The position numbers were made by a program, and so were the translations under genes. The notes below the pieces were generated by a model, which had not been told where the DNA came from, searched no databases, and saw only the letters and a list, made by a program, of their open reading frames with translations. From Selaginella moellendorffii (lineage: Eukaryota; Plantae; Lycopodiophyta), in assembly GCF_000143415.4 (NCBI RefSeq), contig NW_003314351.1:121490-185489 (forward strand): 64,000 nt of DNA, given 5' to 3'. Numbering within the stretch: position 1 is the first letter of the stretch; every line of letters starts with the position of its first letter. Of the stretch, positions 22,816 to 25,900 are shown in pieces.

Positions 22816-24660
22816 TTAGTCACCACCTAGATACTCTCTATACTTCGCAGCAATATCCCTTGGACGAGCATCAGTTCGCTGCTGCAAAACAAAGCGAAGC
22901 CAACCTGCTACATTTTGAGAAAACATAGACAGGTCAACTTCCCGGAAAAAGGTATCACGTAAGCGACAGCACCCGTCCAAGTCTCCCTTGGCTGCTGCTT
23001 CTTCCCACGGCAGCTTCAAACCCGCAACATACAAGCAGGTGTAGACAACTGAGACGAGCTCGGTCACCAGATTCGGCTGCAGCCTGGTCAGGTTGCGGCA
23101 GGAGCTGAAGAGCAAGTTCCCCACCACCTCGGACGCATCCTCGTCTCGTCGCAGATCCAGCGCACACCCAAAGTCGTAAAGGTAAAACCATCGATCCGTC
23201 TTTACGTTGTACACTCCCACGTTTCTTGGATTGATGTCGCAGTGTAAGACCTTGTGGTCCTGGAAAAAGTGTTGAGAAAAAATATACGAGATCAGAAGTT
23301 TTACATCTTACGTGTAAAACCAGGACCGCCTCTGTTAGATCTTTGCAAAGCTTCTCCACAGTTCCAACATCAGCGTCGCACGGAAACTGCTCAAGGAAAG
23401 GAATTCCTTCGTTCCGTGTGACAACAGCAGGCCTGCCATGCCAGTGACCATAGAATACCAAGTTTGGTATCAATGAACAGCCACTCGACTTCAATCTTTT
23501 CAAGATCCTGCCCTCGTTTTTCACCTGGAACGAGAAAAAATACAAAAATAGAAACCACAGTAATAAGGCATGAACATTCTACAGCACTCACTTGGTTCCA
23601 CAGCATAGGTGGAAGGCATAAGTTGTGAACGGTCTTGAGAGCCTTCCGAGAATGACCGATCTTCAGCCAAAGTGGATCACTTTTCCCATCGATCACAACC
23701 TTGAAGACAGCGTTTGATAGTGATTCTGTACGAAGTTTTGTGACAATTCGTACGTTGAGGTCCGGAGTGTCTGACTTTTTGTTTCCAGCAATCAGCTCGA
23801 GCGTCGTTGGAACGCTGGGGAAACAAACGCTGTTGTATAGCGCCACTAGACAGCTTAGCCAATACAAGAATGCCAGTTCCTGAAAAGATCAAGAAGTCAA
23901 GTGATACTAGACAACGCGTTAAGGTCCACAAACCTTCTTTTGACGGTTGGATGATTGCATCGACTTGGAGCAAACGAGATCCGGAGGCTTGGCCACCATT
24001 GAACGGAAAGAAAGCTGTATTTTGTCGACAAAGACAAGAGCAACATGAAGAACATTGTCTTCCTGGATTTTCTCCCTGGATACATATTGATCGTGAGAGA
24101 AGTTTGTGCTGAGATAAAACTTAAGCTTACCGGAAAGACTTCTCGTCCAGGAACAAACTCAGATTGAAGCGAGCAGCAAAATCGTCGCAGCTCAGCAGCC
24201 CCAAACCCTTCAGCATCTCATGAGCCAGATCCCGCGTGCTATCCTTCCTTTCAAACTCCTCAAAGGCGCCGGCACGTATCTGGAACAGCCCGAGCGCGGC
24301 CATCACCCTCGACACATTCTCATGAAGAGCTCCAAAGCAACACCGCTTTCCTTCTATTTGCTCGTCGCGGCTCCTCTTGTTGGGTCTCAAACGAACACAG
24401 AAGTAGTATTTCACATCTGGAGCAATGCAAATCTCCCGCTCTGGAGCAAAAACCCTCCGCCAGAAACCATCCCCACTTTCGAAAAACGAAAATGGGCTAC
24501 CTGGGGGTATCTGTGCCCTTTCTCTGATCTGCTCCACCACATCCGCCAAGCGGACGCCTGGCTGGATGACAAGCTCACCCACTTCCTCCTGCGATAGCAC
24601 CGCCTCGGGGCTTGGCGGCAAAGGCACCATGCCAATTTTACAATATACCACGTTTGCCAT
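22816..24660 (-). CDS. Header domain + degenerate nuclease-like domain + atypical (CK1/FunK1/CR-kinase-like) protein kinase, ~538 aa, 5 exons
   Basis: Exons 24660-24131, 24075-23934, 23879-23592, 23524-23312 and 23259-22816 have GT-AG borders and splice to one open frame. Kinase motifs: AVFKV, LWLKI, KNEGRIL, VLHCDINPRN, LYDFG, GNLLFSS, LPW. Confidence 0.85.
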
Positions 24661-24672
24661 GCAGAACCCTAA
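24661..24672. promoter_or_regulatory. 12-bp spacer between divergent start codons containing a telo-box-like AACCCTAA
   Basis: The sequence reads CAT-gcagaaccctaa-ATG. Similar AACCCTA motifs sit just upstream of other starts in this window (e.g. ~49101, ~53923). Confidence 0.5.
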
Positions 24673-25900
24673 ATGGACACTTGCATTCACTACTTCTGGG
24701 CGGTCGGGGACCCGCAGCAGCGCTACGATCCGGACCCGTCTCTGGTGGCTGCTCACATCGACAATGACAGCTTTCATGTGTACTCTCAGGTCAGTCTTGG
24801 TCAGGTGGCGGATTCCATCAAGGCGAGACTGTCCGGTGATGAAGATGATGTCATCCCCGCCGGCCGGCAGCTGGTGTCTTACCTGGAGTCCTCCAGCGAT
24901 GGAAGCCGCCACTGGACGAGAGTGCGGCATGAAACCGCGGCAATTCCACTCGACATGTCTGTGCCGCACCATTTCTTCAGGGTTGTGATTGTTCCCCGGG
25001 CGGAGGCAGAGGAACTGGCGGAGGACTCAACGAACACTGTAGGAACTAGGCTCTTGTCGACGTCGGAGTTGATGAAGAGTTGGACGGGTCACCTGCGCGA
25101 GTGTCGGAATCTGTGGTCCGAGCTCAAGAGCTTCAAAGAAACGCTCAACATCCAGATCGCGAAAAATGGATTCAACCGCTTTTGGGGGGAGAACAAGAAG
25201 GGCATCAAGGACAGGTGTAATGGATTTCGTGCGGAGATATGCTTCAAAGAAGTATATCCATTCACTTCCCACGACTATGGGAAGCAGCTCATGGAGAAAA
25301 TACTTCCACTGCTGGATGGTTTATATTCTGCCCCTGGAAAGCACATCTGGGTGAACAAGACAACAGCGGGCCTTCACAGGGTTGATCTTGCGTACTGTCG
25401 ACATGAGGACAGCAACGTCTACGACGATGGACAGGCATTCGTGGAGTACAAGGCGCCCAAGAAATTCACGGTGAAAAGCAATTGCTGTAACAGCTTGTAA
25501 CCGTGATCTTTTCAGGAAGGGAAAGCCCAGCTTATCGACCGTGTTGCGCGAGCGAGGCACGTCCGACGAGTGCCCAAGCTTGTCATGCCTTGTGGCGTCA
25601 TGAACAACGAATGGTTCCAGCCAATGCTCATACAGATTGGTGCGAACGACTCCGAGATGGTTGCATGGGAGGGTCGAATGGTGAAGATGGGCAATCGAGA
25701 CGGCAACTTCTGCAAGATGCACATCAAGAATGAAGGGCTCAAGGAGTTCGTCTTTGTCATGTGGCTCGGCCATGAGCTGGGTGAGCAGAATTCTGGCGGC
25801 TCGGATTCGAACGGGGACAGTGGCAGTGACAGCTCTGGTAAGGCAGCTATGTATACCCAATCTTGTCTACTCATTTTTCAAAGTGATGCTTACAGGTTGA
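24673..25900 (+). CDS. Header domain + PD-(D/E)xK restriction-endonuclease-fold protein (Crinkler-type REase-like), ~374 aa, 3 exons
   Basis: Exons 24673-25470, 25516-25837 and 25896-25900 (GT-AG) splice in frame to give HRVDLAY...GQAFVEYKAPKKFT|EGKAQLIDRV, the D...ExK...Q signature. The N-terminus is homologous to that of the divergent kinase. Confidence 0.8.

Follow-up and report, generated by a model that had tools for sequence, protein, structure and literature searches.

How two divergent genes can each be transcribed when almost no DNA lies between their start codons is the question raised by a locus in a 64,000-nucleotide (nt) stretch of Selaginella moellendorffii scaffold GL377655.1 (hereafter, the window), in which a kinase gene on the minus strand and a nuclease-like gene on the plus strand stand head to head. 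Locus L002, retrieved through an annotated protein, is base-for-base identical to window positions 16816-30303. A preliminary description of this DNA had placed the two start codons only 12 base pairs (bp) apart, and the string CATGCAGAACCCTAAATG at 24658-24675 matches it exactly, i.e., CAT (24658-24660; the kinase start codon in reverse complement), a 12-nt spacer (gcagAACCCTAA) and the ATG of the nuclease-like gene (24673-24675), written CAT-gcagaaccctaa-ATG. The bare CAT-N12-ATG pattern is unremarkable (23 in the window versus 19.6 expected), and the junction is real because of the gene evidence on both sides rather than because of the pattern itself. A second CAT-N12-ATG, with TTAGGGTT at 4942-4959, was set aside as coincidence; it sits in AT-rich, Helitron-like DNA (4293-4847, minus strand, and surroundings) containing an open reading frame (ORF) with a GLPHCHFL motif. 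The head-to-head pair, with 12 nt between the start codons and an identical spacer, is found in both haplotypes, i.e., in the window and in GL377638.1 (proteins P0005/P0007). Such spacing of nuclear start codons is extreme for a land plant. In the public annotation it is masked, the two coding sequences (CDSs) being placed 369 bp apart, because the kinase is annotated from Met120. With the starts 12 bp apart, intergenic DNA cannot accommodate promoter or leader sequences, as the preliminary description had already concluded.

For the nuclease-like gene, ATG 24673 opens a 275-codon ORF, coincides with the annotated CDS start of SELMODRAFT_427340 (P0004) and is directly preceded by an in-frame TAA (24670-24672). 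The next in-frame methionine is residue 94, and starting there would remove the N-terminal header that is described below (residues 1-110; 24673-25002, plus strand; closing in FRVVIVP). Annotation, translation and contigs of the public run X1, which are spliced and hence RNA-derived, define a plus-strand gene at 24673-25900 with exons at 24673-25470, 25516-25837 and 25896-25900 and a TGA stop at 25898-25900, giving 374 amino acids (aa) by the RNA contig. Intron 1 (25471-25515; 45 nt, GT..AG) is in frame and contains two stop codons, and its removal is confirmed by a spliced contig; introns across this neighborhood are all 45-69 nt long. The public P0004 (469 aa) agrees on the start and on intron 1 and then continues into a pseudogene fragment. 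This downstream part of the model is wrong, because the RNA contig joins 25837 to 25896 and stops at 25898-25900, whereas public SELMODRAFT_427340 (469 aa; allele, 503 aa) splices, within 25838-26637, into a relic of the kinase gene. The encoded protein carries a D...ExK signature (RVDLAY...FVEYK), and its language-model neighbors include the PD-(D/E)xK families HSDR_N and PDDEXK_12, at 0.85; profile searches of Pfam, NCBIfam, PADLOC and PDB returned no match. We read it as a header of ~110 aa followed by a PD-(D/E)xK-nuclease-like domain. Its TAL-repeat matches were discarded as repeat artifacts, and P0003 as a spurious bacterial repeat protein.

Likewise, the kinase gene SELMODRAFT_427339 (22816-24660, minus strand) was re-modelled as a protein of 538 aa on the basis of spliced contigs, translation, identity to P0001 from Met120 and Pfam/PDB kinase matches. 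Its exons lie at 24660-24131, 24075-23934, 23879-23592, 23524-23312 and 23259-22816 (stop TAA, 22818-22816), and all four introns (52-67 nt) are confirmed by spliced X1 contigs. The public model P0001 (SELMODRAFT_427339, 419 aa) equals our model from Met120 onward and is without the 119-residue N-terminus (24303-24660), including the whole header (residues 1-100; 24361-24660, minus strand); the RNA contigs and the paralogue favor the longer form. ATG 24660 is the best-supported kinase start, one that we accept with considerable confidence, because (i) a spliced X1 contig extends to 24576, i.e., to kinase codon 29, far upstream of Met120; (ii) the header aligns from residue 3/4 with P0002 (MANVVYC versus MDPNVVYC) and, likewise from residue 3, with its allele P0006; and (iii) in P0002, an in-frame TAG lies two codons ahead of the ATG. 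P0002 (SELMODRAFT_427587, 540 aa, 35% identical) was the sole true relative of the kinase in an exhaustive phmmer search of 1.84 billion representatives. Met11 (24630), which the preliminary description had named as an alternative start, is Gly in this paralogue. The catalytic motifs HCDINPRN and DFG are present, and the protein matched TTBK1/CK1 in PDB at 1e-6 and Pfam PF00069 at 1.4e-5, the latter below Pfam's own cut-off. The minus-strand product comprises a header, followed by a middle region and then by a protein kinase of the CK1/TTBK-like type.

Both ATGs had been said to open mutually homologous domains, and this was borne out by shuffle-tested alignments. BLASTP between the two first exons found no match. 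By Smith-Waterman alignment, the plus and minus headers were collinear, with a z of 4.9 (p ~0.002 against shuffles), and the plus header was similarly collinear with that of P0002 (z 6.0; a score reached by none of 2000 shuffles); hhalign of the headers gave an E of 0.0013 over 80 columns. An alignment of six sequences, in which the nuclease-like gene, the kinase and the paralogous kinase are each represented by both alleles, starts at Met1 and contains 13 invariant columns. These comparisons support homology of the two N-terminal headers, with a likeness that is weak but above chance. Homology between the kinase middle region and the nuclease domain was rejected as not significant (z 1.4 and 0.6). 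A short motif pairs in two independent alignments (LKEFVFVMWL at nuclease-like residues ~338-348, KKELAFLYWL at kinase residues ~222-232; the P0002 counterpart is LKELGFLFWV), and it may have survived from a domain that the two proteins once shared outside the header. At the DNA level, an inverted repeat centered on the spacer was sought and is not present.

Annotation, the in-frame stop, the reach of the RNA and the paralogue alignment support the two ATGs, which are the best-supported start codons of two intact, spliced, divergent genes. Evidence on the 5' ends comes chiefly from X1, in which both genes are found at similar depth (6.1 and 4.7) and correctly spliced. Its contigs end at 24576 and resume at 25153. 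Since these ends adjoin heterozygous single-nucleotide polymorphisms (SNPs) at 24577 and 25152 (the variant letters in X1 being alleles of the second haplotype), they are assembly breaks and not RNA ends; over 24835-25152, the gap fits an allelic divergence of 8%, at which the SNPs are spaced more closely than the assembler's word length. Around both starts lies an interval without haplotype difference (24618-24834; 217 nt) that no X1 contig covers, which suggests, if only weakly, that neither RNA extends over much of it. Upstream start codons also bear on leader length. If transcription began further upstream, the plus-strand ATG at 24659 would start an out-of-frame ORF of 110 codons that spans the true start, and the minus-strand ATG at 24686 would start an upstream ORF of 5 codons that terminates 8 nt short of the kinase start. 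Because of this layout and the uncovered SNP-free interval, we favor transcription start sites (TSSs) near the spacer. The sole AT-rich patch (CCAAT at 24631, ATATA at 24643), found 26-42 nt upstream of the plus ATG, also fits short leaders. A prokaryote-style promoter/terminator scan, a method unsuited to the S. moellendorffii genome, returned nothing useful.

The account that we prefer, and that as a whole we consider rather more probable than its competitors together, is of a true junction with a compact bidirectional initiation zone at the spacer, TSSs close by and short leaders. One such zone, centered on the telo-box-like spacer, would drive both genes, and the upstream promoter elements of each would be encoded in the first codons of the other. 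Each TSS would probably be no more than a few tens of bases away from the spacer. Either the leaders would then be very short, at most ~13 nt in the nuclease-like gene and ~25 nt in the kinase, or the 5' ends would overlap in antisense by just tens of bases; long overlapping 5' untranslated regions would not be expected. AG dinucleotides in the spacer on both strands (24663-24664, plus; 24669-24668, minus) offer a third possibility, omitted from the preliminary description, in which the 5' leader is spliced. The arrangement most likely originated in an ancient inverted duplication of a header-bearing gene, and would link the genes with respect to both recombination and chromatin state without being a requirement of the kinase family.

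The spacer had been described as little more than a telo-box-like motif, and most of it is indeed filled by the octamer AACCCTAA (24665-24672, plus strand), whose final three bases form the in-frame TAA just upstream of the plus ATG. Eleven copies of the octamer are present in the window versus 2.1 expected (five-fold), several of them at most a few hundred bases from the 5' end of a gene. More broadly, AACCCTAR occurs at 14 window sites (e.g., 576, 593, 30214, 30369, 31358, 49102, 49134 and 53954), a four- to five-fold enrichment that includes some close pairs. Compared with the telo-box (AAACCCTA, then A/G), which is found in promoters and 5' untranslated regions of plant genes, the spacer octamer is a candidate element: gAACCCTAA matches 8/9 bases of AAACCCTAA, the first A of the consensus missing. 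At the paralogue, AACCCTAG lies 15 nt before the ATG in L001 and is the only AACCCTAR in that 13.7-kb locus. Positional conservation of a telo-box at the paralogue was nevertheless rejected, and downgraded to a hint, the motif being in place in L001 and not in L004, the second allele. A promoter-proximal role of the telo-box-like motif is plausible.

Of the competing explanations, the one that survives best corresponds to the first alternative of the preliminary description, overlapping 5' ends. Both genes would have ordinary leaders of 50-200 nt, with TSSs well inside the first exon of the partner; the mRNAs would then overlap substantially in sense/antisense at their 5' ends, from which transcriptional interference, double-stranded RNA or small RNAs could result. 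Plant leaders are typically tens to hundreds of bases long, which counts for such an overlap. A pyrimidine-rich patch (CACCCACTTCCTCCTGC, ~24578-24594) is found 80-95 nt before the plus ATG, and the SNP-free 217 nt, extending across both 5' coding ends, could reflect a double constraint of coding plus promoter. Leaders of this length would, however, take in plus-strand ATGs at 24629 and 24659, which open an out-of-frame ORF of 110-120 codons over the true start, and minus-strand upstream ATGs at 24686, 24758, 24777, 24818 and 24854. In addition, the two RNAs would add up over 24618-24834, exactly where no X1 contig is found, a weak argument in itself. We consider extensive overlap unlikely.

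Several observations weigh against the preferred account of two true starts flanking a compact initiation zone. The minus frame upstream of 24660 stays open up to an ATG at 24972, so that an N-terminal kinase extension is excluded by homology only and not by an upstream stop; this open frame is uninformative, because it runs codon for codon antisense to the plus CDS, where TTA, CTA and TCA account for only 2/375 codons (a codon-usage artifact). The public kinase model begins at Met120. No read or contig covers 24577-25116 in the RNA data examined, where a contig gap proves nothing. At the paralogue, the corresponding part of L004 has undergone rearrangement, and what adjoins the ATG there is no more than an ACCCTAG core in reverse orientation. 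Of the codon differences between the kinase alleles of the two haplotypes, 16 are nonsynonymous and 2 synonymous, a pattern that may reflect either diversifying selection on a fast-evolving gene or decay under relaxed constraint. The nuclease-like protein has no detectable homologue but its own allele in 5.8 billion protein clusters. As for the headers, the Pfam Crinkler model PF20147, whose relevance is discussed below, gave no match at E up to 10 with the six headers or the whole first exons, and the AlphaFold models of the two headers (pLDDT 33 and 44; both strand-strand-helix-strand-strand) are too poor for a fold search.

Two of these observations, namely the start of P0001 at Met120 and the absence of X1 contigs over 24577-25116, would also fit a model in which one ATG is unused, the kinase being translated from Met120 or Met11 or the nuclease-like mRNA starting far downstream. 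In functional terms, the genes would then stand hundreds of bases apart and have a bidirectional promoter of the ordinary kind. This model appears improbable: the RNA contig at codon 29, upstream of Met120, halts exactly at an allelic SNP, and the 24835-25152 part of the gap is accounted for by the 8% allelic divergence. Moreover, residues 3-10 are kept in P0002/P0006, in which the start is fixed by the in-frame TAG and Met11 is replaced by Gly, and a kinase shortened by 119 residues would be without a domain that matches the partner header over its full length.

Comparison of the haplotypes bears on whether the pair is maintained. All frames and splice sites of both genes are intact in both haplotypes, and the spacer and the 217 nt around it are identical, adjoining an allelic hot zone in the nuclease-like gene (24835-25152, plus strand) with 27 differences in 318 nt (~8%) and a 9-nt in-frame indel. 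Differences in the hot zone are mostly synonymous, and those elsewhere in the gene pair amount to ~1%; an allelic block of old age or a tract of gene conversion could account for the zone. Overall, the nuclease-like alleles show 19 nonsynonymous and 20 synonymous codon differences in addition to the indel, which indicates purifying selection on a gene that looks constrained.

The preliminary description had gone further, taking the pair for obligate partners that are locked together genetically and transcriptionally. Obligate partnership is not supported, because the sole paralogous kinase is intact and partnerless in both haplotypes, tblastn having found no partner within 6 kb upstream of P0002 (L001) or its allele P0006 (L004). 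A 65-codon ORF located 8 nt from the P0002 ATG (L001 5795-5992) was considered as a relic partner header and rejected (z 1.0, p 0.17; nothing by tblastn). Transcriptional locking did not find support either. What speaks for it is co-presence in X1 at similar depth and co-absence in X8-X10 (three stranded 2026 RNA-seq runs, 12% of each sampled), i.e., just two expression states, from two studies; in X8-X10, zero reads fell on either gene, at a depth of 20-50 on the neighboring PIP5K gene.

Downstream of the nuclease-like gene lies a decayed, internally deleted and inverted copy of kinase parts (26422-26700, plus strand), which was identified by tblastn and blastn (78-92% identity) and supplies the C-terminus of P0004. 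Within 26304-26700, the relic matches three kinase segments at this identity and is preceded by a tandem duplication of 61-64 nt (26304-26367/26365-26428, 92% identical), so the nuclease-like gene is flanked by kinase sequence in opposite orientations. The locus is dynamic. That the arrangement is a historical leftover without present function, in which an inverted duplication or rearrangement set two header-bearing genes back to back and one or both are now drifting to pseudogenes at a site prone to rearrangement, is as improbable as an unused ATG, since the 16:2 ratio of the kinase alleles, the zero reads in three deep RNA-seq runs, the decayed inverted kinase fragment just downstream, a paralogue that manages without a partner and a tiny family known from S. 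moellendorffii only are set against complete reading frames and correct splice sites of both genes in either haplotype, transcription and correct splicing of both genes in X1 (including removal of the 45-nt intron with its two stops) and nuclease-like alleles whose ratio of ~19 nonsynonymous to 20 synonymous differences indicates purifying selection.

Gene order in this neighborhood is a STIG1-like gene (21748-22251, plus strand), the kinase (minus), the nuclease-like gene (plus), the kinase-gene relic and a MORN/PIP5K gene (minus). PIP5K reads over 26990-27715 carry paired variants at 25-45% (e.g., 27000 G>C, 27392 C>T and 27531 T>G), which fits expression of both haplotypes in X8-X10. One tRNA gene (35559-35628, plus strand) is the sole Rfam match in the window.

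Two public gene models are corrected by this analysis, i.e., a kinase without its 119-residue header and a nuclease-like gene run into a pseudogene fragment. If TSS mapping confirms the preferred account, the locus would be a natural case of a core promoter wholly within coding sequence, and would offer a compact bidirectional unit for the study of short-leader translation or 5' antisense coupling in plants. A more far-reaching proposal is that the genes form a two-gene conflict module, i.e., a toxin (nuclease) with its modulator (kinase) or a sensor with its executor, in which the zero-length intergenic region is itself functional. Initiation in one direction would then exclude or tune initiation in the other, or short antisense 5' RNAs would couple dosage; recombination would never separate the genes, the telo-box would keep both silent until triggered, and conflict would have left its traces in the 16:2 allelic differences of the fast-changing kinase and in the deep divergence of the nuclease alleles. 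We regard this proposal as improbable.

Among known protein families, the closest likeness is to the Crinkler (CRN)/CR proteins of Zhang, Burroughs, Vidal, Iyer and Aravind (2016), which, as summarized in PMC5289972 and PMC12957317, have an N-terminal header of ~100-130 aa followed by a restriction-endonuclease-fold nuclease or a protein kinase; CR homologues have been reported from land plants. A motif HVLVxxP closes the Crinkler N-terminus (PMC5289972), and the header endings of our proteins, judged by eye, resemble it in the form RVV(I/V)VP (FRVVIVP in the nuclease-like protein, YVRVVVP in P0002/P0006 and a weaker FCVRLRP in the window kinase). After the header helix, only loose equivalents of LxLFLAK (FSFFESGDGFW and QLVSYLESSSDGSRHW) could be seen. 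Header searches against Pfam and PDB returned only noise. ESM-Atlas neighbors of the plus protein were Crinkler clusters and PD-(D/E)xK proteins (0.78-0.86), and language-model neighbors of the kinase header were ubiquitin-like families (0.78-0.84); lying below 0.9, the former are leads only, as are the latter. Unlike Crinklers, the proteins of both genes have no signal peptide, PF20147 match or clear LxLFLAK, and, unlike Crinkler effectors, the pair is found in a non-pathogenic plant. In architecture the pair resembles CR-type proteins, and we leave family membership undecided. In the literature, we found no description of a head-to-head pair of nuclease-type and kinase-type Crinklers with 12 bp between the starts. 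The locus suggests that plant Crinkler-like genes can occur as a header-sharing nuclease/kinase pair, and provides a place for testing domesticated conflict modules.

The known head-to-head plant gene pairs that offer the closest comparison have hundreds of bases of true intergenic DNA. In the pair At5g06290/At5g06280 (PMC2772851) and in paired NLR (nucleotide-binding leucine-rich repeat) resistance genes such as Fom-1/Prv (PMC10883720), as in our preferred account, divergent genes depend on one short control region acting as a bidirectional promoter. The NLR pairs encode related proteins; these cooperate, whereas cooperation between the kinase and the nuclease-like protein is only a possibility. 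Unlike in both of these systems, only 12 nt separates the two CDSs of the S. moellendorffii pair, and its promoter elements must therefore be in coding DNA.

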